Origin: Podarcis erhardii | Lineage: Eukaryota | Reading direction: 5' to 3' (one strand) | Assembly: GCA_964252035.1 (NCBI GenBank) | Contig: OZ176204.1 | DNA length: 64,000 bases | Shown: piece after piece, positions 3,068 through 60,824 of the stretch | Layout of the letters: each line of letters opens with the position of its first letter | Position numbering within the stretch: the first letter of the stretch is position 1 | Position numbers and translations under genes: made by a program | The notes under the pieces: generated by a model | Seen by the model: only the letters and a program-made list of their open reading frames with translations | Databases searched by the model: none | What the model was told of the DNA's origin: nothing

Positions 3068-6000
3068 TAAGGTACATTCACAATTTGGGACAGATCATGC
3101 AATATGCTATGTAATATTTTTAGCACTATCTGTAATATAATGCTCACTGCAGCATATCATGACCAGTGCTACAAAAATTGACAAGGCACAAATAAATAGC
3201 AAATAGCAAAAATAAAAAGAAATATTGCTGACGCTACTAAAGTTGGTGAGGTTTGCATTTTGTCACAACTATGGAATCAAAAGCTGCTGAAACAATGTAG
3301 GGATGTGCAGGTAATGGAAGAATGCTCCAGTTCTGGGAGAATTCCTTCATCCCATCTTCAATCATTCTCCACACAAGCACTAGCTTTGATTACAGGGAAT
3401 GGGGTGAGGCCCCTTCAATCTTCATTAGGCTCAGCTTAATGTTCAAAAACTAACCCAGTGGGCATAAAGGAAGTCTGAGTATGCAAAACTTTCATATCTG
3501 TCCTACCGCCACTTGCTTGTTAGCCCCTTCTTCCCTACCTGTTCATGGTTACCATAGCAATGGCAATTGCTAATCCTAATGCTGCTTGATGCATTCCCCA
3601 TGCCCCTTCAGCTGTGCCAGGATGAAGGAAAGAAGAATTTCCCCCACTCCAATGTGGCATTATCTTAAATGCCAAATCTGACTAAAGGAAATGCTTCTTA
3701 CCTTCATTTTCACATAGTGTCACATAGCCAAGCCTGGCTACATGGTGCAATCGTAAAGCCAAATCAGAGGAAGAGTTTGAAGCATTACCTTCACTCTGAT
3801 ATGGCTTTTTGTCATCACATAGCTAGTCTGTTTTTGCAGTGTATGATGGCACGGCACCAAACTGAGTAGCTAAAGTGTGGGGATGGGGAAAATGGCACAG
3901 GGTAGCTGCAGGGAGCATGGTCACCACCCAAGGAAAAGTGTTTTGCAGTACACCTCTGAATAATTTGCCCCATTTGAGTTTTCCTTGCCCAAAGAATCTC
4001 TAATGGTGTTTTATAACCTGTGAACAACACAAGGAAACTGAGGTTTGATTCAGTTCCACCCCAGTTGTCATTCATGCATTATTTTCTTATACCACCTAGA
4101 GGAAAAACAGAGGTGGGCAGCTGATTTCAGACTGACATTCATCTCCTCCTACTCTTGATCATGGTTGTTTTATTTGTACCAGTTGCAGAAGACAAGAGAA
4201 TTTTGTCGTGTCTCAGCATTTTCTAAGGAGAGTTTCAGTTTCTGTAAAATCGTGCCAACTATAGCAGCTGCTTGAACTTGGAGTTCTCAACAGATTTTAA
4301 CAGTACACAGAAAATGGATCTATGCAACTTTTTTTTTTTTTGCACTGATAAGAAGCCTCATTGCTTGTTTCCCATTGCCTTGAATACTTTATTTTTAAAA
4401 AGAGACATACTAAAATAGTCAGCACAATCCATTCCCCCTTTTGCTCAGTACATTTTGGATTCTAAATGGGTATGACAGGGGAAAAAATCTTACTCCAAAA
4501 GGAAGTACACAGAGAGCAACTGAATGTTCAGTTATTTGTCTCTCTGCCCATGTATCAATTTAGCCTGTCAATTAATATTGTTTCTCTTGAAACTTTATAT
4601 ATAAACAAAACCCTGGACAGCCATGGGAAGTATAACATGTATTGCAGATGCATTAGTAACAACATTCCTATGACAAATACAAGCTTCCTTGTCTCAAAAA
4701 CAGGCCAGAAGGCCTAGAACGACTTATCTGCCTTCACTTACCATCACTGATCTTTCTTTCTTTGCAAACTCCCATTTGATATTGTTGGTAGGGCTTAGCA
4801 TCAACTTAAGGCGGAACAGTTACTAGTGAGAGGAAGGCTTACAGAACACATAAAGGGTCTAAGTTTTAGTTCAGTGTTGTCAGGACCTTATCCAGGCAAG
4901 TGCAGCACAATAAATCTTTGCTCCCAAGGGTTAGGAATTTCCTGAGCAGTGCTAAGGATGGCCTAGTTCCCAAAAGCCTTAAAACACCCTTTACACCCTT
5001 CTTTCTAGCATCCAGGTCTTGGACAAGAACAACATGCTTAGTGCTGAGCACCATTCGCATTTTTGCCAATTTCTCAGGGTGTGTGTGCCATCCTGTCCCA
5101 GAATTCCCTGTAAGAGTGGCGTCCATCATTATGCAACTTTGTTCCTGGGGACCTTTTGGGAAAGGGAAATGGTGGGAAATGGTTTTGAGGAGCAGCTGTG
5201 AGTTTCTTCCCCACCTTGTCTTTCTGCTTCTTCCCATGAAATCTCCTGGCTAGGTTCACCACTCTGTCTAACTCTCACAACCCTCCCCCTTCAAATTAGA
5301 GCCAAAATATCTTGTCTAAGAGCTTTAAGCTCAGAACTAAAATAATCAAGTGCAGTAACAGAAACAGACAAACCAGAATTACACAAGTGCAATTATAAAA
5401 TAATTTGTAGCTTGGGGGGGGGGAATCTAAATGCAAAATAGACATTGGTACATCTGCAAATGTAATGGTTACAAGGTCATTCTCAACATTATAGAAAATA
5501 GAGAAGCAAAATGATTCTTAGTGGTACTAGAGACAAATCAACAAGGAAAAAAGACAGTTGCTTCCACGTCAGTCTTTAAACTATAGTCTGAAGCCCTTTC
5601 TATCAACAAGTGGTACTGCATGCATGTTGAACACTGAACACATACCTCTAGTCAATTTGCAAGCCAACAGAAACATTTTTAGTGATGAGTAGTATGTAGC
5701 ACATCAAAGGCACAATTGCTAAAAAACTGAAATAATGTATTAAAAGGACATGGATATTATGCAGGCTCCAAAGCAGATGGGACAATCAAATGGAGAGAAA
5801 GAGGGAAAATATGAAATGGGAAATGATATCATTGCCAGGTTGGCAGATCTTACAGAATAAAAATCCTAGGAAAAAATATATAGTTCTAGCAATTTAAACA
5901 AGGTATTATTATCAAATGCTTGCCACATAAGAAATCTTACCTGATCTTGCAATGCCTGTGCGGGATGAAAAATATGGATACTGGCAAGACTCGTTAGATG

Positions 6001-7299
6001 AATAATGCCACTATCTTGCTACAATTGAGACTTCAAAAGGCCATTACTGATAGCAACGGATCCTATCGAAATAAAACCAGCGGCAGACAGAGAAATATCA
6101 GCACCACCAATGGAATGTGTCTTTTAAAGCAAATCAGTGTCAAAAGAGCTGAAATTGTAATGTATGGCTATAGAGACATGATAGAGAAAAGAGTAGCCTG
6201 CTAATACTGCAATCTCATTTGTCTCCTACAAAGGGCCAGAAAAATAAACCTAAAATCCAGCAAAAATAAAGTGAGGCTCTGTCTTACAACAGTACTTTGC
6301 ATGGCACATCCTGGATCCTCACAATTTGCAACTGGGCTTTGAAAGGGCAATTCAACAAATTGCAGAGCACCCAACCTTGTCATCTTACATCATTTACTAA
6401 GAGATAATTACACTGCACACTTTCACAGGTTAATTCTTTAACAGCTCTTAGATCCATCTGGACCCAGTGGCTGCTTAAATTGTATTCATTGGTAAAACCA
6501 AGAAGTTAATCTTCCAAGTGCCCTCCCTTGACTGAGACACAAGAATCTGGTGGTCTGTCTCTTTCTTGGTGAAGCAAAGAATTTGCTCATCTCCTCTAGA
6601 AAATCCTTACATTCCTTTAACAATCTTTTGATATGCTCATCCAGGTTTTACAGAGGTCAGAATTCTGATCAGTGGTGCAGCAAATGTTGTGTGATATACT
6701 AAGTAACAAGACCTCTGTATCTGGGACAGTATTAAATGATCAGGGCACATGCTTTCTTAACCAACCAGCCTCAACATCTTGAAAGTATAGCACAGAACTG
6801 TATGTGTTTCCTTAAAGATCAATAATATAGATTTTGCTCCCTTTCCCATGCAAACATTGCTGGAGTCAGTTAGTGTCTGTAGCGCATAAGTAACTTTATT
6901 AACAGTTTGATGCATGGCTTCCTTTGCAAATATAAAATCATTTAATCAGTTTAGTTTACCAGGGCACAAGAGTAATGGATTATTGCTACAAGCACATGTT
7001 CAATTGTGGCGAGCCTTTTCCTTCAGTACTGGACTAGGCTCTCTGCCCCAGAACTCTCCCTCATTGTTTCTGGTTTTTCAGGAGCAAGTTTTAATGGTAT
7101 AACTATTTGGTAAAAGCAACAACAACCCACACAAAGAATTGTGCCTAATCAAACATAATTTTGTGATCTATTTCCCATGTTGGTCTTCAGAGCTTCACTC
7201 AAATTACTAATGGTCTACATTAAGATTTTGCTGCAGTCATTTGTGCTTTTGTTTTATAAAGTAGGCTCATAACATTTCTTGAGATATGTCCAGCACAGC

Positions 7300-7373: not shown

Positions 7374-8153
7374 CCGTATTTTTTGCCCTATAGGACGCAC
7401 TTTTTCCCCTCCAAAAATGAAGGGGAAATCTGGGTGCGTCCTATGGGGCGAATGCAGGCTTTCGCTGAAGCTTGGAGAGCGAGAGGGGTTGGTGCACACC
7501 GACCCCTCTCGCTCTCCAGGCTTCAGGAAGACATCCGCAGCCTATGCAGCCCTGCGGGAGTTCCCACAGGGCTGTCTAGGCTGCGGATAGTAGCCTGCTT
7601 CCCGGAATGCCGGGCGTGCTGAAAGCAGAGCGCTCGGTGCTTTGGGAACACATCCGCAGCCTAGGCAGCCCTGTGGGAGTTCTCTGCAGGGCTCCCCACG
7701 CTGCGGATAGCAGCCTGCCGCCCGGCAGGCGGGGTGCCCTGAAGCAGAGCGCCCCGTGTGCCGGGCAGACATCCGCAGCGTGGGGAGCCCTGCAGGAGTT
7801 CCCCGCAGGGTTCCCCACACTGCGGATAGCAGCCTGCCGCCCGGCGGGCGGGGCACCCTGAAGCAGAGCGCCCCGTGTGCCGGACAGACATCCGCAGCGT
7901 GGGGAGCCCTGCAGGAGTTCCCCGCAGGGCTCCCCACGCTGCGGATAGCAGCCTGCCGCCTGAGGCAGACATCGGCCAGCCCCACAAGCTCGGGGGACAG
8001 CAGGGAGGCGTAGCGCCGTTCCTCGACCTGGTTCGGTTTCCCCGACCTGCTTTTGGGGGGGAAAATAAAGGAAATTTTTTTTCCCTTTATTTCCCCCCAA
8101 AAAAACTAGGTGCATCCTATGGGACGGAGCGTCCTACGGGACGAAAAATACGG
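7374..8153. mobile_element. Non-autonomous Tc1/mariner-pogo (Tc2-type) DNA transposon (MITE), 780 bp
   Basis: TIRs CCGTATTTTTTGCCCTATAGGACGC versus reverse complement of the end CCGTATTTTTCGTCCCGTAGGACGC. TA duplication at 7372-7373 and 8154-8155. No transposase ORF. Confidence 0.9.
7532..7961. repeat. GC-rich tandem array, 119-bp unit x ~3.6, each full unit with two inverted repeats
   Basis: catccgcagc starts at 7532, 7651, 7770 and 7889 (spacing 119). The last unit has a perfect 23-bp inverted repeat atccgcagcgtggggagccctgc / gcagggctccccacgctgcggat. Confidence 0.95.
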
Positions 8154-10939
8154 TAAATATATTTTAATATTTATTTAGTCACCTCACAAAATAATTTCTC
8201 TAGGCAATGCAAACGGGCATCAAACAGAAAAAAGATCTGCTGGAGATCACTTCAGGAACAATAGCTTTTGCTGTGACTGTCCCTTTAAGATGGCCCCAAT
8301 CTGCCTCACCAAGAGACAAGACTGCTGCTACTCAGCCTGTGCAGGGGGAAGCAGGGCAGGATAGGAGCACCTGCTACTGGAAGGGCTGTTGAGGCTCAGG
8401 AGCTTAAATAGCCCAGAAGAAGCAATTGCCAGAGAGGCAGAAAATAGTTTCCTGGAAAAGGAGCCAAGCTGAGCTGAGGGTCTCTTGGCTCCACTACAGG
8501 TCCTTCTTCCACCTGCAGTGGAACACAGAAGGTCCCAAGCCCATATGACAAGGATTTGGGAGGACCAGGCCATATCTTAAGGAGGGGCCAGCAGCAGAGC
8601 CCCTGGACCTTTCAGTCTCCCAACACCCAAACCTTGGATAAGGAGGTCTTGGGATGTACCAGCTGAGAAGTTGTGTTTGTACTGCCTGAGACGGGCCTAT
8701 GGAGTTGGGAGCTTGATCCTGTACCTAACGCTAAACCTCAGCAAACCCCGTGTAGCTACGTTTGGCATGTCAGATCCTGATCTGGGGCTCAACACACTAG
8801 GGAATCTACGGACATTGAAGCTTTGAAGGTGCCCCTTCTGCAGGTTGACATCACAGTTAAACAGTAAAATTACAGTAAATTCAGATTTACTGAATCTAAA
8901 CAAAGCATAAGGGAATAACACAAATGCAACCAAACATTTAATGCTTAAGAATAATCCCAAACCAAATTATTAGCAGTTCTAATTTGGATCTTGTCAGGGC
9001 ATGAATAAATGACAGTTTAAGGAGCTGGGTGCATATTCCATGATGGAAGAAATGTGGGATATATTAATCAGATCTATTGATTTATGATCCATTTCTTCTA
9101 TTGATGTGATTTTATTGTTGATTTTATGTTGCTTACCAGCGTTATAGTTTTAAGGTTGGAGGTGGAGAAAATCTTCAAAATACATACATACATACATAAA
9201 AAGTAAGAAAACAAACAAGAATAGCAGAGGAAGATAAAATGGGATTTAAAGCTGTGCATTTTGAGCTTCCAATCCTCTGAAACAAGGGGTGGATGGTCTA
9301 TAATTCCTCAGGTATTTCCTTCTGTTCATCTGGTTAGCGATATGTAAGAATCCTATGGATCTTTTGCAACTTTTTTAAAAAATAATAATAATAATACACA
9401 TATAGTTTATCAGTGTTGTTGAATGAACAGTATCAAGGCTGCAATAATAGCCAATATCAGTCAGACTAAATAATAAGGAAACTGCTTCTAGGCTCTTGAG
9501 CCTGATACTTTTTCAATAGAATTGTCAGCCTCTTTTTAAATGCAAATTATGACTCATCATCTGGGGATCATCACAAGCTCCAGAGAAGCACTAGAGGCAA
9601 GTGAATCCATCCAGTTCATTAAACTGCATCCCCTTGTAATGAAAAGTATCATTCTCTCAAGAGCGTTGACTAGCGAAGTTCGCTCTTGGCAGAGTCTGCT
9701 TTGCTAGGAGCATGTGATATTTTAGCTACAGAAGAGAATGCAAGTTTCATTACTCAAATGCAAATTTAGCCTGTGGGGAGGAAAAAACTTTGATCCTGAA
9801 AATGTGCTACTAGCAGGGTTCTGAAGATTCAAAACTTAAACAAGATGGCGGACATCTGGGTATCCCTACAGACTGAAGGACATCATGGACATCTGGTAAA
9901 ACCAAGTGGGATTCTAGGAAAGCCTTCTTAATTTTGGTTGGATTTACATCAAAGTAAAATATAATTAGAGCTGCAGTCTTAGTTAAAATTTAAAAGAGCA
10001 ATTTAGGAAGCTGTTTGCTTATTGATGTTTTTATTCATTTGGATTATAATAGCTAGGTACTGCTAAAATGTATTTTTTTCTGATTAGTAGTCTGGTAGAG
10101 AGAAGTTTTTCAGATAAGCTCTTTAAAATGCATTATCCATGGTGTATACTGGCATCATAATACAACACTGAAGTATTTAAGAGCCACTCAGGAAGTAGCA
10201 GAATTGTCACAAAAGAGATAGGCAGGCTCGGTCCTGGATATTAATCCAGTCATTTCACCCTAGCACAAGCACTCTATTGGGTACTCAAGCAAAAGCAGAG
10301 GTTTATTCTTTTCCAGTAGATTACTGCATTCTTCACAAATCCATGCTGCAAAACACTACAACATTGGGTTTTCTACCTATCATAAAATACTAAAGAGCAT
10401 TTTAAACCTGCCAAAAATAAAGTTGAGATCCTGGATCCCAGTGTGGAATGTTCCACAGATTCCACAATAATTAAAGAAACAGTTTAACAGATGGCTCATA
10501 TGTATGAACCAAACCCTTTCCTGAGAGCATTGGGTGAAAGGGGGATTTCTGGCAACACTGGACCGAAGAAATCCAATACAGAAGACCTAAAGGACAGTAC
10601 GTACACATGCATTGAAATACACACACAATTAAATAAGTTACCTTCTAACTGGGATTGGATGCCATAAATATGCATGAAACCCATTTATTATCTCCTGTAT
10701 ACAAATGAATGCAGTTCCTAAGGAGGGAAAGTAAAGCACTGCTCTTGGGCAGGGCGTAGCCACGAAGACACTAAGAAGGTCCCCAACCTGTCCTCCATCC
10801 CTGACACCAGGAACTATGGCTTTCACTGGCAGTGATCCCATAGGCCCCTGGGTGCAGTGTGAACTAATGGGACAAGGAGGGAAGGGGGAAAAGGAAATCA
10901 AACCGAGGCACCTGTTCTTAAAGAACTGTTCTTATAATG

Positions 10940-25200: not shown

Positions 25201-26366
25201 GAGCTAGAAATGTTTTTGATTCCTCTGCATAGTTCATAATAACATCCACCACACTCATTTATTGCTGTCAGCTACTGTGTGCATTTATGCAATTATCTCA
25301 GAGCTGCCAATAATGATGTACTGGCCCAAATGTTTCCATCCTGTTGTAGAACTAATCTATACCAGGTAAGCTGATAGAGCTGTGGAAAGTGAAAAGGGGC
25401 TTGCTCCTTTGTTCACATCTATCAATTCAGAAAGGAAAGATGGAGGGGAGAAAGAAAGACAGTTGGCTATATTTTTCTTCTTTCTATCTCCAACTTTCTG
25501 GCCCTATTTTTCACAGAAGATAAGTGATAATGCTGAAATGTTCCAAGGACACTTGTCCATGGCTTTATAGTTCAAGGCCTTAGATGACTTCTTTTTTTCA
25601 ATTTTTTGAACCAAACAAGACACAGTTAAGGTGAATTCTGCAAGATTGTCTCCTCTGCTCAACAGCTATTGGCTACTTTCTGGAAATAGCCGTTAGGTAA
25701 GAGCAAAACCAAGGGGCAAACCCCACTCTCTGCAGCCATTTGAGGACGATACCATAGTCAACAGTATCAAAAGCCAAAAAGAGATCGGGGGGGGGGGTCA
25801 CTCTTACCCAACCTCTCCTGACAAATGTCATCAACCAGAGTGACCAAGGCAGTTTCAGTGCTATGACTGGGCCCGAAACTGGAATGAAATGAGTCCAAAT
25901 AATCAGTTTCCTCCAATTATGCCTGGGCTGCTAACATCCTCTTGAGCCCCTTGCTCCCAAAGGGGATACTCACTGCTGGGCAATAGCTGTTGTACTTACT
26001 CTTTTGTGTGCAAGGAGGCCCCCTTAAAGAGAAGTTACTCCCTGTGTTAAGCTACATAGCACCCACCTCCCAAATGACGCTTTATTCAATAAGCCAAGAT
26101 AGGCAAGGGTTAAGAGGGTTGGTGACCCACATCCTGAATCTGCAATAGTTGAAACCTGATCCAGAACAGATGAAACAGTCAGTGCTCTGGATCCCTCCAT
26201 AGTCTACCTGTGTCATCCAATTAAAAATCTAGTGTGATTTTGGATTTACAGCAGTGACACTATTTTACTTTCTCTTTCCTTTCCTCCTATATGACTGTTT
26301 GCTCTTGGGCTGCGGCATTCTCATGGGAACAACTTAGCTTGACCTTGACTCTTAGATAAAATTGGA

Positions 26367-27420
26367 ATGAGCGGCACAAGAAAAAGGGGAGCAAGAACCA
26401 GACAAACAACTCTAACCTCAGCTTTACAGACACGTAGATCATCTGTACTTACTCTGCCGTTAGCAGGGGAAGAAGAAATTGTGTCTACTCTGCCGTTGGC
26501 AGGGGAAGAAGAAACTGAGCAGTTACAGTTGGAAGATATGGCCTCAGGAGCAACTGCTTCAATTTTAGAGAAAATTTATGAAAAATTGGAGTCTTTGGAT
26601 AAAAGAGTAGAATCTTTGGACAAGAAAGCAGATGAACAAACAGCCAAAATTGACCAAAATACAGCTTGTCTAAACAAAATAACTGGACAGGTGGCACAGA
26701 ACGTACAAGCAATTGGGCACTGAGGCCACTGCAGAGAATCGTAAACTGGCTGAGGCTACTAGCCAAAAAGTTGAAAATTTAGAACAAGAGGTAAAACCAC
26801 TCTGCAAACAAGTTGGAGAACAACAGATGTATTTGTCTATGATAGAATTGCGGAACCGGGAAAACAATTTAAGGTTAAGGTCAATACCAGAAGCTGAAGA
26901 AGGAAACTTAGTTGAGTTCCTGACTAAAGAATTTTCCAAGTTCTGGCTTATACAGGAAGAAAGGGATTTTAAAATTGTATCGGCTTTCAGACTTGGAAGA
27001 TTTGCAAAGAAAGATAAGCCCAGAGACTGTTTGATAACTTTGAGATCGAAGGAGGAAAGGGACAAGATCTTGGGTTTACACTACGAAAAGTCACTGGACA
27101 TTTTGGACAGAAGAGCTGAAATTTACAAAGACATCCCGAAACAACTGCTGGACCTTAGATCCGCCTATCTTGAATTGGTCAGATTGTTAAGGAGCAACTC
27201 AATTATTTTTAGGTGGGAATTTCCTCAGGGATTATCTTTCACCTTCAGAGGGAAGAAAGTCAAGATTAAAACACTTGAAGACAGAGATAAATTTCTGATT
27301 GCCTACGGAGAGGACCTTCAGAAAGGAATTGAAACACCTTTGGGGCCTGGAGCATCTGCTGTACCCCTTTCCTTGGAACCTGAAGATCCAGAGAAAAAGA
27401 TACCACCCTTAGAGAAATAA
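26367..27420 (+). CDS. L1 ORF1p (coiled coil + RRM + CTD; ~350 aa), split by a +1 frameshift at ~26715
   Basis: ORFs 26367-26723 and 26713-27420 join if one G is removed from attgggcact. Heptad-rich N-half. ELRNRENNLRLRSIPE, PRDCLITL, IYKDIP and FRWEFP motifs are typical of L1 ORF1p. Confidence 0.9.
26451..26512 (+). repeat. In-frame 36-nt tandem duplication in ORF1 (TLPLAGEEEIVS-TLPLAGEEE)
   Basis: tactctgccgtt(a/g)gcaggggaagaagaaa occurs twice, 36 nt apart. Confidence 0.9.
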
Positions 27421-27434
27421 CAGATTTGTTCAGG

Positions 27435-30400
27435 ATGTCTCTGCAACTGTTGAGCTGGAATATTAATGGGTGCCACTCCCCGGAAAAAAGGAGGAAGTTA
27501 TTTTATATATTGAAAAAAGAACAATTGGACATTATTTGTTTGCAAGAAACACACGTGACCAGGCTCCATAAAAAAGTGCTAATAAACAAAAGATTAGGCC
27601 AAGAATTTATTTCTTCGGACCGGGTGAAGAAAAGAGGAGTGGTGATTTATGCAAAGGAGAGCCTGTCACCTAAACTTTTATTCAAAGATAAGCAAGGAAG
27701 AATTTTGGCAATTGAGATACAATATCAAGGAGAGAAGTTTTTGATATTAGGAATTTACGCACCAAATGAAGGGAAATCGGAATTTTATAAGAAGTTGCAT
27801 GAGAGTGTCCTGGACTATCTGGACTATGACAACATTATTATGATGGGAGATATGAATGGCGTGGTATCAACTAACATGGATAAGTCACAAAATCAAAATT
27901 TTACAAAAGATGGCAGACTACCCAAGACTTTTTTTGAAATGACTGACAATATGGACTTGATTGACATTTGGAGGACAAAGAACCCCTTGGGAAGAGAAGG
28001 AACATTCTTTTCTGAAGCCCAACTGACATGGACGAGAATCGACCAAATATGGATATCTAGAGGTCTGGCACCTAAGACCAGAAAAGTGGAAATCTGCCCA
28101 AAGACCTGCTCCGACCATAATGCTGTAAAGATGGATATGACACTACTACCAACCGGCTCCTTTAGATGGAAGATGAATGACAATTTGTTTAGAGATCAGG
28201 AGATTACCAAGAAGGCCCAAAAAGTTTTGAAGGATTATTTCGAGATAAACTTGAACACCATAGTGGAAAAAAGAACCATCTGGGATGCAAGTAAGGCTGT
28301 GATGAGGGGGTTCTTGATACAACAGAATGCTGTAAAGAAAAGGACACAAAATGAGAAAAAAGATAAGATTTTGGAGAAAATTAAAGAATCTGAGAAGAAG
28401 TTAAGATCTAATCCGAAGTCACAGCCGATTCTGAGAGAAATTAAACTCTATCAAGCACAATATTCTAAATTGATAAACCAGGAAATAGAGTGGAAAGTTA
28501 AACTAATGAAACAAAGAACATTTGAATCGGCGAATAAATGTGGGAAACTGCTAGCATGGCAGTTGAAGAAGAGACAAAAACTAAATACAGTTACAAATTT
28601 AGAGATTGAAGGAAGAAACATTCAGAACCCTGTGGATATTAGAAAGTGCTTCCAGAGATACTTCAAAAAACTATACACTCAAGGGCCGCAAGATGAGGCT
28701 GAGATAAAACAATTTCTGAAAAGGAACGGACTACCAAAACTGTCACAAGAAAATAGAGTAATCCTGAACTCTAAAATAACACGACAAGAGATTGAACAAG
28801 CCATTCAGAACATGCAATTGGGCAAATCTCCAGGGCCAGATGGGCTCACCTCCAAGTACTATAAGACATTGAAAGACTATTTGATACAACCACTCTTGGA
28901 GGTTAGCAACGAAATTTTGGAGGGGAAGAAGGCGCCGGAATCGTGGAAAGAAGCGTTTATCACATTGATACCAAAATCGGAAACTGAAAAGACTCAACTT
29001 AAGAACTACCGCCCCATCTCCCTTCTAAATGTGGATTACAAAATATTTGCAGACATTTTAGCAAGTAGATTTAAAAAAGTTTTGAATCAGGTAATTCATA
29101 AGGATCAGGCAGGCTTTCTCCCAGGCAGACATTTGTTTGCTAATACAAGGAACATAATTGATATTTTGGAATTTTTGCAAACAAATATCAATACAAAAGC
29201 AGTGTTAATTTTTATAGATGCGGAGAAGGCCTTTGATAATATTTCTTGGAAATTTATGAAGGGAAATCTGGAAGGGATGGGAGTGGGATGGGGTTTTGGA
29301 AATGGGATTGACGCAATTTATTCAGAACAAAAGGCTAAACTGATAGTCAACAATGTGATTACAGAAGAGTTCAAAATTGAAAAAGGAACACGACAAGGCT
29401 GTCCTATTTCCCCATTGTTATTTATTTCTGTCCTGGAGGTGCTCCTGAACATGATTAGAGGGGACCGGCTGGTGGAAGGTATTCAGGTCGGAGTGAAGCA
29501 ATATAAACTTAAAGCGTTTGCAGATGACCTAGTTTTGACTTTACAGGAGCCAGAATCTAGTACGAAAAAAGCATTACAATTGATTCAAGAGTTTGGTCGG
29601 GTAGCGGGATTTAAGTTAAACAAGCAGAAAACTAAGGTACTGGGGGAAAACTTGACAGTTACAGAGTCAGAACGGTTTCAGAAAGAGACAGAGTTGAATG
29701 TGGTTAAAAAAGTAAAATACCTAGGGGTAAATATAACAGCAAAAAATCTGAGTCTATTTAAAGATAATTATGAGAAATGCTGGGCAGAAATTAAGAGAGA
29801 CTTAGAAAGTTGGACAAGATTGAAACTTTCCTTGTTAGGCCGAATCGCTGCTGTAAAGATGAATGTATTGCCTAAAATGCTTTTTTTATTTCAAACATTA
29901 CAGATTGTGGACAAAACAGAGTGTTTCCGGAAGTGGCAGAGAGATATTTCCAAATTTGTCTGGCAGGGCAAAAAGCCCAGAATTAAGTTTAAGATATTAA
30001 CTGATGCGAAAGAAAGAGGGGGCTTTGCCCTGCCAGACTTAAGGCTGTATTATGAATCAGCAGCTTTCTGCTGGTTGAAAGATTGGCTGCTTCTCGAGGA
30101 CACTGATGTATTAGATTTGGAAGGTTTTGACAATGCGTTTGGCTGGCATGCATATTTATGGTATGACAAGGTTAAGATTAATAAGAATTTCAAGAACCAT
30201 ATTGTCAGAAAAGCAGTGTTTAATGTCTGGACAAAATACAAAGACTTATTGGAAAATAAAACTCCAAGGTGGCTTTCACCATTGGAAGCTAAGGCCAGGA
30301 AAAGACTCAATATGGAGGCCAAATGGCCGAAGTATTGGGAAATATTAGAAAAAGATGGAGATAACTGGAAATTGCAGAGTCAGGAGAAAATGAAAGACAA

Positions 30401-31173
30401 AGTGCGAGATTGGTTACATTATGCTCAGATTAAAGAAGTTTTTAAACTTGATAAAAAGTTAGGATTCCAGGTGGAAAAATCGAAGTTAGAAACGGAACTG
30501 CTAGAGCCTAAGACTAAGGTACTCTCAAGAATGTATAACTTGCTGCTAAAATGGAACACAAGATGAAATGGTTAAATCGGCTATGATAAAGTGGGCACAG
30601 GACATTGGGTATAATATTATGTTTGAGGACTGGGAAAAGTTATGGACTACTGGGCTGAATTTCACTGCATGTAATGCTTTGAAAGAAAATGTAATGAAAA
30701 TGATATATAGATGGTACATGACCCCAGTCAAACTTGCAAAAATATACCACTTGTCTGATAATAAGTGTTGGAAATGTAAGGAAAATGAAGGAACGTTCTT
30801 TCACCTTTGGTGGACTTGCCCCAAAGTGAAGGCTTTCTGGGAAATGATATATAATGAGCTGAAAAAGGTATTTAAGTATACCTTCCTTAAGAAACCAGAG
30901 GCCTTCCTTTTGGGTATTGTTGGCCAAGGGGTGTTAAAGAAGGATCGAACATTTTTTATGTATGCAACAACAGCAGCAAGGATACTCGTTGCCAAGCATT
31001 GGAAAACCCAAGATATACCCACACTGGAAGAATGGCAGATGCAACTGATAGACTATATGGAATTGGCCGAGATGACGGGCAGAATCCGAGACCTGGGAGA
31101 GGAGACGGTGGAAGAAGACTGGAAAAAAATTAAGATTTATTTGCAAAAATATTGTAAATTGTATGAATGTTAA
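27435..31173 (+). CDS. L1 ORF2p (APE endonuclease, reverse transcriptase, C-terminal CCHC; ~1245 aa), one frameshift at ~30558
   Basis: Endonuclease motifs SWNING, LQETH, GDMNG, RIDQIW, SDHNAV. RT motifs GKSPGPDG, YRPISLLNVDYK, QAGFLPGR, DAEKAFD, GTRQGCPISPLLF, AFADD, KYLG. The downstream frame 30568-31173 carries CWKC..HLWWTC. Confidence 0.97.
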
Positions 31174-31584
31174 GCAGGATGCTTGATCATAAACAATTTG
31201 GCACCATTGGAACAGATGAAGTGAATTATGAAGATAAGTTAAATTTACGAAAAAATCAACTTTTTTTAGATAACTATTAGGCTAAGCTTATTGTTTTAAT
31301 AGAGTGAAATGAATATATCTAAAATTTAAGATATAACATTGGAAAACTAGATTGTAAGGTGGGGACAAGGTGATAAATTTGCTGGATTAATTTTTATAAA
31401 TTTGGAACGCAGGAGCGGGAGATGTGAGGAAGTCCAAAGAGGATAAGAAAATATGTTATAAAATGTGATATTTTTGTGTGTTTTGTTTTGTGTGTTGTAA
31501 CAAAAAAACCCTTAATAAATATTATATATATAAAAAAAATCTAGTGTGACTTCACGGCAGGATGTTGCTGTTTTCAACAGGATA

Positions 31585-56211: not shown

Positions 56212-58493
56212 TGCAATAAAATACTTTCAGAACCCTGGAATCATTTCATGGGTCCTACTACTATGCCCCACAATTATTTCTGAATCTCATTTAGGGTGAA
56301 ATTCCTTGCTATGAGCCTGCCTTTCCCCTTAGAATTGTCATGCAAGCCCCTTGCATGAATATGAAATCAAGGGTTTAATTCATCAGCTGGAGCAAACAGC
56401 AACCTTATGGCAAGTGATTTCCCATAACCTGTGACAAGTACAATATGTCACGCTTCTGAATCCTTCTGGTTGAAGTGTTCTGCTTGACTCTTCCTTTCCT
56501 CATTCTGCAAGTTTGAAACTAACTGGCAGATGGCGACTTCTTGCTTCAGAGACATCGCGCCAGCAAACTGAAATAAGCCTCAAGTTACCTTGAGGCTTTT
56601 ATGTGACAAAAGTTTGCTCCAGAGCTTACTGTATCAGACTTAGGCCTTTGCAGAAAACACCAGGTGCTCTTCTGTAAATTGAATTCAGTGTTTCTGAGGG
56701 GTAGGAGGTATTATTGATCAAGCATTAATATGCAGGAAGATAGATATCAGATTTGTTGAAATTTAAGCATATGACCCACATTTCTGGAATGTATCCTCTA
56801 GCAGATTAAAAAGCTTCTTTTCTTTTCCTTGTTCCCTATGCCCTATAACTCTTTTTAAATACATGTATACTTTTTGGCTGTAGGAGTTTCCCAGCAATAG
56901 CTTAAATGAGTCAATGAGACAAATACAACTTATATTCTTCCATAATCAGGACTGGTAAGAAATTTAAATGTAAGGTTTTTGAACACACAATTAAAAAAAG
57001 TTACATTACTTCATCGATATCCCTATGTGATATTCAAAAATAGTGAAATTTCACCTTGTAAAGATTTACATTAAACAGAATAATAGTAAGCTGCTTTTTG
57101 ACAAATACTCTTTTTTAATAGAAATAAATAGGCTGTTTGATGTTCTTCATTTAGATGAGCATTCATGTATTATGTCCTTTTTGTCCATTGCACCAAAATC
57201 ATGCAAATCCAGTTCTGGCTCCCCCTCCCCTCATTTTCCAGGTTAAAAAAATAAAACAAAACCCTGTTGCTTATTCAAATTTATTTTCTTCAAATGTGTG
57301 ATTGTTACTTGGGGAACAAAATAACAAACACACAAACAAACAAACAAACAAACGTGGATATTTGTGGTATCTCCATCTCTCTCTCTCTCTTTTCCATCTT
57401 AGCACAGCTTGCCAAGAGACTGTGCTATATTTCAACCTTTACTGTACCCTTTAATTTTACTGCCTGTCTGTTCCACCTCTTCCTCATAAGCAAATGGAAG
57501 AGAACGGAATAACCTTGACTCTTCAGGAAAGCAAATCAGATAACACTGTAAAGGTCAGCACAATATAGTTTTCTATTAAAGAGGGGAGCATTAGCCACAT
57601 CTAATCCTCATTCTTTTGACAAAGATTCTAACAAGATGAGAAAATGGCAGAGTCTTAATCCATTTGGGTACCAGGAATAAATACTGAATCCAGTTTAACC
57701 CCTTCTTGTGGCAGCTTTATTGTTGAATTCCAAGTGTACATACTATAGATCCTGCGGTATTAAAAGGAGCTGCAATGCAGGCAGAAAGCAAAAGAGCCCT
57801 ATCAGTGCAATTGAAGCAGAGCGAAAACTTTGAAAATATTCAATATACTAGTGCTTTTCTTGCCGACTTTCTATCTCTTTGTTAAATGGAGGGGTGCAGA
57901 GCAACTCGAGTTTGGTTTCATGTTATACAGCCAAGAGAGAACACAATGGTAGGTTGTTTTGCTTGGATCATATTTCTGAGCAATCGTAAGTCCCATTTAA
58001 TATACCGTACATTTCTCCTTATATGCCCCAAAAGAACAGGATTTAAAGAACAATATTCTTGTATTTATCTCCAACTGTTTTTTTAAAATAATATTTATTA
58101 CTTTTAAAACTTACAAAAAAGAAAAAGAAGAAAAAAGACAAAAGAGAAAAAAAGAACAAAAAAGAGAAAAAAATACAATACAATACAATATATAGACTAT
58201 ACAAAACACAACCTTAACACATTAAACTAAACACAATAAACTAATCAAAACAATACAAAAACAATTTAAAAGCATACATCATACCTTTTCCATATTCTAT
58301 CTTTCATTCCCTTGTTTCATCGACCTCCTCTCACCTCCCTTTTTGTATTCCATTTCTATTAGCTGTCTCAGCAATTCCTTTCCCTCTTTCTCTATTTTCT
58401 GTCATATAAATGTCTTAACATATTTTTAATCTTATTTTCCATTAAAACTAGTATACTTATTTAAGCTTAACTCCTTAAAACATTTCCACTAAG

Positions 58494-58589
58494 ATGAAAA
58501 GATGTTATGATATATGTTATACTGTTTTTTATTTTTGCATTTAAGTTTGAAAAATCCAAATAAAATATTTTATATATATATATATATAT
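58494..58589 (+). mobile_element. 96-bp L1-type 3' tip nested in the HAL1-like 3' UTR
   Basis: 16-bp TSD AAACATTTCCACTAAG at 58478-58493 and 58590-58605 at a TT/AAAA site. AATAAA and (TA)n tail resemble 31445-31534. Confidence 0.8.
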
Positions 58590-58755
58590 AAACATTTCCA
58601 CTAAGGCCATAAAATTTCATTCCAACATTTTTCTATCACTCATTAATTTTACAATATTTCTATATATAAACTTTAAATTTTCCAATCTTCTTCCACCATC
58701 TCCTCTCCCCGGTCTCAGACTCTGCCAGTCACTTCTGTCAACTCCATTCAGTCCA

Positions 58756-59561
58756 TCAACCTGGAGATCTTATGTCCGAGGCTCTTAACTCTTTTCCACG
58801 TCCCTTCTGCAGGTCTTCTTCATATTCTTTGATGCTAAAGAACAGATCTCGGGCAAACTCCGACCTAACGATACTTTTATTCCTTCTCGACAGGTCAGCC
58901 AAGTTTCCATAGTAAAAGCTAAGATCCATAAAGTATTCCAGGGCATGTTTCAAGATTCCTCCAAATCCAAAGGCCCCTAGAACTCCAATCTCCTCCTGAC
59001 CCAAGTCCATGTCCCAAAAGTCAGTTAATCCCTGCATGGAGGGATCTTTCCAACTTTCCTTTTCCAGTCCAGGTCGGGCTCCGATCCTCAAAATCTGACT
59101 TTTTCTAGTTTCAATCATAAAAGGCCTCAACTTATAGTCCTCAATTTGCCTCTGTAAGACTGAGGCTCCCACTTGTATTACTTTAGGTTCGACAACAACA
59201 ACTTTCTCCTTCTCCTTTTCCACAATTTGTCCTGCTAAAGTAAATTCCTGTACCAAATCCTGAATAATTTCTGTTTTGGTCTCACTTTTTGTCCCAAATT
59301 AATCACTTTTTGTCCCAAGTTATCAATTTTAGTAGTCAAAACATCCGTCTTCTTGTGAAGTTGTTCCAACGAGTAGCTTATCTTACATAATGCAGTCACT
59401 AAAGCTTCTCCTGTCGATATTCTTAAATAGTCCAAGGTCAATCCCTGATTCTCACAGTTCTTATCATGCAGCTGGAGATTTCCCAGCTCCACTCTTGTAA
59501 CAGTTTCAAAAGCTCCCTCTAGAGGGAAACAGTCTCCACTTGTATCAATCCTTTCAAGCAC
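58756..59561 (-). pseudogene. Diverged L1 ORF1p homolog (~270 aa), 1-nt frameshift at ~59283
   Basis: Colinear blocks versus ORF1 of the L1: LHKKTDVLTTKIDN ~ LDKKADEQTAKIDQ; GAFGFG ~ SAFRLG; SIVRSEFARDLFF ~ IIFRWEFPQGLSF; YEEDLQKG ~ YGEDLQKG. Confidence 0.85.
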
Positions 59562-60149
59562 AGTTCAAAAAGTAAAGTTAGTTTCAATTTTCATTTACTT
59601 TTCCTCCTTTTTAAACTCAAAAGAGGACAATGGAAACAATATATTTCTCTTATTTAACTAACTGTCAACATACGTTCTCTTCACTGTCAATGAACTCTCC
59701 CAAAAATGTCAATCTACTGGCAGCCCATTTCCAGGTTCAGAGCAGTGGTAATTTAATTTTTATCACTCTCTCCTGCAGGCTACACAATCCAAAATTTCCC
59801 CCCTCTTCTCCTGCTTCCAAGGGGGGTTTAATGATTTCAATCGATGGAAGTTTAATCCTTTACATAAGGCTTTCCAAGACCTTAGCCTGCAGCTTCTTTG
59901 CTTCAATCTATTTATAAAAGGGGAAGGCGGACTTCCTGTTTGAAACCTTCCCGTTTTGGTACCAAATTAAGACGTTTGTAAATCCAATTTTCCGTTCTAC
60001 TCACGGGTAGTTGTTTGAAGTCAAATTGTCCACAGGAAAAAGTCAGCACTCTCTGGCAACAGCAATGCAGCTTCACTCAGTGAAAAAAGCAATCAATTCG
60101 AAGCACCGCGCCATTCACCCCACGTCACTCCGGATCCCCAAGACTGGGT

Positions 60150-60331
60150 TTCCCCGCAAGCAGGGGAGGCGCAAAGGGTGCCAGCCGAATCCCACATTCA
60201 CAAGCTTCTCCCGCCTGTGATTTTAGTGGGTCTCCGCCTTCGCCGTGGCAGTCAGACCCTGATTTCCACGGAGCAAATTCCTCCCGATCGGAGGAACTCC
60301 GCCATTGCCGGAGGCGCCAACCCGGAAGTCC
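60150..60331 (-). promoter_or_regulatory. CpG-rich L1-type internal promoter region
   Basis: The 5' end contains an ETS-type CCGGAAGT motif (read ACTTCCGG) and a YY1-like AATGGCGG motif, with many retained CpGs. Confidence 0.5.
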
Positions 60332-60824
60332 TTTATCTCCAACTGTTGACTTGTGTTGAGTAGTGAATATTCAGCTGATTAGAAAAGCAACATAGCCGAA
60401 TCTGATATTTCCTTTTGTCCTTCTGCTTCCAATATCAAGAAGAAGGAGAAGAATGTATGGGTTTTATATCAGAACACCTGGATCAATATTGAGTAATAAA
60501 ACAAATCACAATATATTCTGACAGCATACTCTAACAGAACATCATGCCCTCTTAGCCTGCACACTTAGATGCATCGTAGGGAGAAGGAGTAAAGCAAAGA
60601 AAGCATATTCTATTTTATTTTTTTGCAGATAAAATGTACTAATTGTCTTGATCCCAGTGTTAATCAAAGGAGGGGAACACTAATGTATGAATATGGATCT
60701 AAGGAATGGCATATCATTAAGCCAGGTTTGAGTGGTTTGCATGAATAATGGGCTGTAATTGCAAGCATATTTAATTTCTCTAATATTGAATCTAAAAGCT
60801 CTAAGGAGATACACCGCATGAAGA

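Follow-up and report, generated by a model that had tools for sequence, protein, structure and literature searches.

A probable HAL1-like, ORF1-only family of L1 derivatives in lizards, seen from a dead copy in Podarcis erhardii

A stretch of 64,000 nucleotides from the lizard Podarcis erhardii (assembly GCA_964252035.1, contig OZ176204.1; this whole stretch is called the window here) carries, on its minus strand, a retroposed unit of about 2 kb that we consider, with a probability of about 0.85, to be a dead copy, complete in structure, of a HAL1-like family, that is, a non-autonomous, lacertid-associated lizard family of single origin derived from L1 retrotransposons. HAL1 elements, as far as PMC5753468 and PMC4161310 describe them, are non-autonomous L1 derivatives that encode only ORF1p, the protein of the first open reading frame (ORF), and that arose several times independently in mammals. 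The reading is carried by the anatomy of the unit, by its part-by-part homology to L1, by a junction and ORF1 deletions that it has in common with divergent relatives, by distinct target-site duplications (TSDs) in two genomes, and by relatives whose ORFs are open and have ratios of nonsynonymous to synonymous substitution rates (dN/dS) below 1.

Anatomy of the unit and its L1 parts

The unit (Table 1) lies between two exact copies of a TSD that, in the orientation of the element, begins with AACAG and is directly preceded by TC, which we take to be a degenerate site of the L1-endonuclease type. Inside it follow, from 5′ to 3′, an untranslated region (5′UTR), the remnant of a shrunken ORF1 (the mini-ORF1), a non-coding relic of the 3′ end of ORF2 (the tip), and a 3′UTR that closes with a polyadenylation signal and a short A run. 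No similarity to endonuclease or reverse transcriptase (RT) was found between the TSDs when the element was compared with the proteins of an L1 copy located elsewhere in the window; the ORF2 of this neighbouring L1 matches the element in tblastn only with its terminal 35 residues, and outside any open frame. The comparisons made by search took in the element from position 58177 upward, and Rfam returned only chance-level matches on it.

Each of the remaining parts has a counterpart in autonomous lizard L1s, for which a parental-type copy in Podarcis lilfordi (CANTUW010000010.1, 8028-14275; L014) provides the best example. In addition to an AATAAA terminus, this L1 and the window element have in common the first 335 nt (71% identity), the coiled-coil segment of ORF1 (80%), the tip (81% over 149 nt, L014:13721-13869) and an 88-nt block of the 3′UTR, whereas the L1 has about 3.6 kb more, comprising the end of ORF1, the endonuclease, RT and the zinc knuckle. 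In its ORF1, the element is 36% identical to autonomous lizard ORF1p at best.

The 5′ end is complete, because its terminus, which starts with GGACTTCCGG, is the same in the window copy, in a P. lilfordi relative described below (L005) and in the L014 L1. Over the first ~400 nt, the observed/expected CpG ratio is 0.62-0.86 and the GC fraction 0.45-0.61, while most of the rest of the element has a CpG ratio of 0.0-0.5. The L014 5′ end (8028-8362) is also 79% identical to that of L005, and the conserved terminus (window 60297-60331, minus strand; L005:5078-5115; L014:8028-8065) carries a ACTTCCGG box and a CAATGGCGG box, which resemble ETS and YY1 sites. At the opposite end, the terminus AATAAATAT[C/T]AT followed by an A run is common to L005, L006, L014 and the neighbouring L1, and the conserved 3′UTR block, which is rich in G runs and contains invariant TTGCTG and GAGGA.GTC motifs (alignment A5), is also present at about 31376-31436 (plus strand) in the neighbouring L1, at L005:6862-6996 and at L014:14017-14105. 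This block may be the counterpart of a purine-rich tract found in the 3′UTRs of mammalian L1s. The first ~335 nt, this block and the extreme 3′ terminus are the parts shared most consistently with L1. None of the three shows covariation, and the 3′UTR block has no compensatory pairs and a consensus folding energy of -1.62 kcal/mol. Thus, sequence blocks are shared with L1, but not the conserved 3′ RNA structure expected of a LINE/SINE partnership of the stringent type. Outside these short blocks, a global alignment of the element's 3′UTR with that of the neighbouring L1 scores the same as shuffled sequences (z = 0). A separate peculiarity of the window copy is a stretch at 58480-58610 (minus strand), containing (TA)10 as well as a 16-nt motif that is repeated, for which the relatives have no counterpart.

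The stop codon of the mini-ORF1 lies within TTGATGG, at the very point where the ORF2-derived sequence begins. The tip that follows is the counterpart of the final 42 ORF2 codons and is interrupted by three stops in the ORF2 frame. An earlier note, made from the letters of this DNA without database searches, had described a 16-bp TSD around the whole unit, a complete and CpG-rich 5′ end, the absence of endonuclease and RT, and an ORF1 stop overlapping the last ~40 codons of an ORF2 tip about 80% identical to L1; all of this agrees with what we measured, the identity of the tip being 78% to the neighbouring L1 and 81-83% to the P. lilfordi L1.

Table 1. Coordinates of the element, its parts and the neighbouring L1 in the window
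Feature	Position	Strand	Remarks
Whole HAL1-like mini-ORF1 retroposed unit	58080..60331	-	2,252 bp between TSDs; collinear with L005:5077-7172, L006 and L007
TSD copy at the 5′ end of the element	60332..60347	.	16/16 match to 58064-58079
TSD copy at the 3′ end of the element	58064..58079	.	16/16 match to 60332-60347
5′UTR with presumed internal promoter	59421..60331	-	first 335 nt (59997-60331) L1-homologous and CpG-rich
Mini-ORF1 remnant, 221 codons	58756..59420	-	ATA at 59418-59420; stop TGA at 58756-58758
Remnant of the last 42 L1 ORF2 codons plus ~20 nt of L1 3′UTR, non-coding	58613..58759	-	78% over 127 nt to window 31046-31172
3′UTR	58087..58612	-	includes copy-specific (TA)10 at 58571-58590
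Purine-rich conserved 3′UTR block	58302..58389	-	common to L1s and to L005, L006 and L007; 80% to L014:14017-14105
3′ terminus	58080..58099	-	AATAAA at 58094-58099; short A run at 58080-58084
Neighbouring L1, broken copy truncated at its 5′ end	26238..31534	+	own 15-nt TSD at 26223-26237 / 31535-31549

Relatives, junction and ORF2 tip

When 1.84 billion representatives were searched exhaustively by HMMER with a 166-aa piece of the window ORF, 12 hits were obtained, all of them Podarcis proteins or contigs of the same architecture and none of them mammalian (0/12). A word-index protein search with the same piece found no matches, and a profile search with alignment A1 found 6 proteins only. The open relatives of 201-215 aa (P0001, P0003, P0005 and P0010) finish with the motif RASD.R.PG, as does the window ORF; for instance, P0001, with 212 aa, is 51% identical to the latter (E 1e-37), while P0002 stops earlier than the others, at 174 aa. 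The hits also include full-length lizard L1 ORF1p, namely P0009, which aligns to the human L1 ORF1p structure 2YKP, P0012 from P. lilfordi, which is a genuine L1 ORF1p because its gene lies immediately 5′ of genes for Exo_endo_phos and RVT_1, and the C-terminal half of P0004, a Podarcis muralis model (XP_028576234.1). This last protein model bears the name TRIM39-like and has a RING and a B-box domain followed by the ORF1p-like half in place of SPRY; either TRIM and ORF1 are truly fused in it, or the gene model extends into an adjoining L1.

At the DNA level, an ORF2-tip-like stretch follows the stop of each ORF in the relatives' contigs, which represent at least five sublineages of the family. 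The most complete relative, L005, is a 2.1-kb unit at 5077-7172 of a P. lilfordi chromosome record (OX395127.1) with an open ORF of 201 aa. It has its own TSD, of 19 nt with one mismatch, at a TT/AAAA site, shares both termini with the window copy and is collinear with it (~70% identity in the 5′UTR, 66% in the ORF plus tip, and 74-76% in blocks of the 3′UTR). The closest relatives of the window element in DNA (75-85%) are L006-L010, which come from five runs, are 99.4-99.8% alike and are themselves broken. In a maximum-likelihood tree, a branch with 100/100 support separates nine mini-ORF1s from four full ORF1p, and the window copy is placed beside the base of the former on their shortest branch (0.18). 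The window copy thus belongs to the least-diverged lineage of the family, and its ORF1 and ORF2 relic are still L1-like because no other lineage has changed so little since the origin of the family.

The break between ORF1 and ORF2 reads CCAGG/TTGATGG in the alignment of the window copy, L006, L005 and L001, with the stop codon supplied by the ORF2-derived letters. The simplest reading of these sequences would be one ancestral deletion followed by radiation: in a single event, a point about 30 codons short of the ORF1 stop would have become fused to one 42 codons short of the ORF2 stop, and the fusion point itself would have generated the new stop codon. What would be left over is an L1 promoter and 5′UTR, an ORF1 of ~200-220 codons, a non-coding ORF2 relic, an L1 3′UTR and a polyadenylation signal. 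The alternative that the window copy is a one-off, that is, an ordinary L1 that lost 3.6 kb from its interior during or after a single insertion, would make the junction unique to this locus. Its single occurrence in the window, where blastn finds no second copy and matches the element only to itself and, over 127 nt at 78%, to 31046-31172, is in line with this, and so is its broken ORF. Against it, the same junction, ORF1 deletions and termini recur both in the P. lilfordi copy, whose TSD is different, and in contigs that are divergent and stem from other runs, while an orthologous site is excluded by different flanks and by 50-70% divergence, and we regard a one-off deletion as highly improbable. 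The earlier note had made copies with the same junction and distinct TSDs the test of its proposal that the unit moved in its ORF1-only form, as a member of a non-autonomous HAL1-like family; such copies were found, and that part of it holds.

A further suggestion of the same note, that the retained tip may mark a cis signal for the ORF2p of reptile L1s, has fared worse. Put as a tip kept by selection, in a stringent type of 3′ recognition, it could draw on the fact that the tips of the window copy and L006 are 76-83% identical to two L1s, equal to the identity of these L1s with each other (79%) though the tips are non-coding, and on three contigs from separate Logan runs (L008, L009 and L010) that break off exactly where the tip starts; such ends are, in turn, as expected if an assembly graph branches where the sequence turns L1-like. 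Over 129 columns, the identities to the L014 L1 and the window L1, respectively, are 0.83 and 0.78 for the window copy (2 gapped columns) and 0.81 and 0.76 for L006 (4), with 0.79 between the two L1s (0). They fall to 0.62 and 0.59 in L005 (8), 0.57 and 0.57 in L001 (20), 0.51 and 0.48 in L002 (35), and 0.45 and 0.49 in L003 (39), and much of the L013 tip is beyond alignment. Four lineages have thus kept an open ORF while their tips decayed to 45-62% identity. RNAalifold finds no structure of note in it (-0.68 kcal/mol, no compensatory pairs), and a single tip sequence folds no better than its shuffles (z -0.31). The good preservation of the tip in the window copy is accounted for by phylogenetic inertia, because the branch of this lineage is short in the ORF as well. 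A selected cis signal is therefore quite unlikely, and the tip is a relic of the endpoint of the founding deletion.

The neighbouring L1 had likewise been put forward as a candidate autonomous partner. It has only 300 nt ahead of its ORF1 start codon (26538), and both of its ORFs are damaged, ORF1 by a frameshift and ORF2 by a break near 30566; its ORF2 is 79% identical to that of the L014 L1, and its ORF1 is not of the lineage closest to the element. It is a dead copy, a sample of an L1 lineage and not a partner.

A shrunken ORF1 and the selection on it

The mini-ORF1 of the window copy is split between two minus-strand ORFs in separate frames, one of 108 aa (59561-59235) and one of 166 aa (59256-58756), by a 1-nt gap relative to the relatives at about 59265-59285; apart from the effect of this frameshift, it contains no in-frame stops. 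The start codon of the relatives and of L1 aligns with an ATA in the window copy, and the frame upstream of 59420 belongs to the 5′UTR because relatives carry stops there, so that the ORF comprises 221 codons and not the ~270 of the earlier note, which had also counted a single frameshift and two internal deletions. The deletions stand, but the lesions are the frameshift together with the loss of the start codon. Owing to both, the window copy is dead and no longer encodes the protein. For comparisons that read through the frameshift, it was bridged by an X, and comparisons were made between natural copies only.

The 166-aa piece matches full-length lizard L1 ORF1p with E values from 6e-10 to 4e-4 in HMMER. 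The bridged ORF is 36% identical to P0012 over 163 aa (E 3e-21) and far more distant from the ORF1 of the neighbouring L1, for which E is only 1e-3; the earlier note had called the similarity to this L1 patchy. In comparison with full ORF1p, all mini-ORF1s have a deletion of 40 aa in the RNA-recognition motif (RRM) and one of 17 aa in the C-terminal domain (CTD), and have lost the last ~30 residues. The larger deletion falls in the RRM part when lizard ORF1p is aligned to human ORF1p (2YKP). As a result of these losses, the RRM, the CTD and the C-terminus are all incomplete, and what the shrunken ORF1 would keep is the N-terminal coiled-coil part, half of the RRM and a shortened CTD. The mini-ORF1s match no Pfam ORF1 model, a result that is uninformative on them because full-length lizard ORF1p was missed as well. 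The coiled-coil part of the window copy also contains a 21-nt (7-codon) tandem repeat (59282-59330, minus strand), with NLGQKV twice; the repeat is ancestral, with one unit lost in the other mini-ORF1 lineages, because the full-length ORF1p P0009 has it.

In the relatives, the mini-ORF1 is under moderate purifying selection. We estimated dN/dS between natural copies by the Nei-Gojobori method (NG86), with bootstrap limits and Fisher's test, and in 6 of the 7 pairs the latter finds it to be significantly lower than 1. The values are 0.35 for L005/L011, 0.35 for L005/L013, 0.29 for L001/L012, 0.41 for L002/L001 and 0.55 for L002/L003, all with bootstrap upper limits below 1, and 0.63 for the window copy and L001 (Fisher p = 0.02). 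Decay on terminal branches inflates these ratios. A dS of 1.8 between the window ORF and the ORF1 of the L014 L1, near saturation, was not used, because misaligned codons alone yield such values at 36% amino acid identity. The earlier proposal had asked for an ORF1 that is open in the family and does not evolve neutrally, and this is what the relatives have, with dN/dS of ~0.3-0.6, even if the window copy itself is broken.

It could still be argued that what spreads is in essence a non-coding parasite of L1, with an ORF that is a decaying relic and open relatives that are an effect of ascertainment. The broken ORFs of the window copy and L006-L010, as well as the deletion of half of the RRM, would fit such a view. 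Nevertheless, eight ORFs of 196-215 codons are open and have the same end motif in lineages that are only 30-50% identical, the five pairs with bootstrap limits below 1 have dN/dS of 0.29-0.55, and nowhere along the whole element is conservation better than over the final ~25 codons of the ORF. We consider a non-coding parasite unlikely.

Several observations weigh against the HAL1-like family as we propose it, and some of them also favour a non-coding parasite. The remaining pair, L003/L004, has a dN/dS of 0.81, which is not significantly below 1; the selection in the other pairs is only moderate in strength; and the sample of open ORFs is an ascertained one, as the protein library contains called ORFs only. 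AlphaFold gives no confident fold for P0001 with alignment A1 (mean pLDDT 37), its only feature being a single long helix at residues 2-45 (pLDDT ~60) that aligns to the coiled-coil region of ORF1p. To the single copy in the window must be added that the other copy with a TSD of its own comes from P. lilfordi and that the further sublineages are represented by contigs, and that the matches behind the label “lacertid” are all from Podarcis. Finally, the case for mobilization by L1 ORF2p in trans is drawn from anatomy, namely the TSDs, the TT/AAAA-type sites and the lack of RT.

Mobilization, known systems and significance

With these points in mind, a HAL1-like element of this kind would use its own promoter of the L1 type for transcription and would be copied into the genome through target-primed reverse transcription by the ORF2p of autonomous L1s acting in trans. 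Its master copies would need the small ORF1-like protein, which would most likely assemble on their own RNA or enter L1 ribonucleoprotein particles (RNPs) through the coiled coil. A more specific version, which we offer as a tentative possibility, is that the mini-ORF1 encodes a selected, RRM-less coiled-coil protein by which a parasite of 2 kb gains access to L1 RNPs or disturbs them, that this arose once and radiated in lacertids, and that the cis-acting parts kept are the L1-type promoter and the purine-rich 3′UTR block and not the tip.

The closest parallel is found in mammalian HAL1 elements (Smit 1999; Bao & Jurka 2010, as cited in PMC5753468), which, so far as they are described there, also have L1 ends and ORF1 only, and are thought to use ORF2p in trans. 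The lizard element differs from them in its separate origin from a lizard L1, in its shrunken ORF1 and in the 42 ORF2 codons that it keeps as non-coding sequence. It has what marks elements of the HAL1 kind, that is, ends and an ORF1 derived from L1, no endonuclease or RT, independent copies with different TSDs, and an open ORF under selection in its relatives. Descent from mammalian HAL1 is not indicated, since the nearest relatives among the HMMER hits are Podarcis L1 ORF1p and the parent is a lizard L1. No description of HAL1-type elements in lizards was found in the full-text literature searched, which lay outside Repbase and subscription journals.

Telomeric HeT-A, a non-LTR element of Drosophila, is comparable in that it encodes only a protein of the Gag/ORF1 type, which is under selection, and obtains RT from elsewhere. 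However, HeT-A belongs to the Jockey clade, has a full-size Gag and plays a telomere-specific role for its host, and the family of the window element gave no sign of a host role. A third comparison is offered by L1TD1, which, to the extent that PMC4161310 covers it, is an ORF1-derived protein with a coiled coil that may interact with L1 ORF1p, but is encoded by a single-copy mammalian host gene, whereas the lizard element is part of a TSD-flanked mobile family of many lineages. One might ask whether the element, too, is a host gene derived from ORF1 in the manner of L1TD1, as its ORF1-derived protein is under purifying selection in the relatives. Yet the TSDs, the AATAAA with its A run, the L1 promoter and 3′UTR, the differing genomic sites in different genomes and the many divergent paralogous lineages leave this idea with almost no probability.

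If the unit is a member of a HAL1-like family, as we propose, this would be a squamate family of independent origin, and ORF1-only parasitism of L1 would recur beyond mammals. Its protein lacks half of the RNA-binding domain and is nevertheless still open, with dN/dS of ~0.3-0.6, in lineages that are 30-50% identical, which raises the question of what an ORF1 protein that no longer binds RNA by its RRM contributes to mobilization in trans. The window copy, coming from the least-changed lineage, preserves the outline of the founding deletion nearly to the base. In annotation, it would follow that such units of 2 kb have to be kept apart from truncated L1s.

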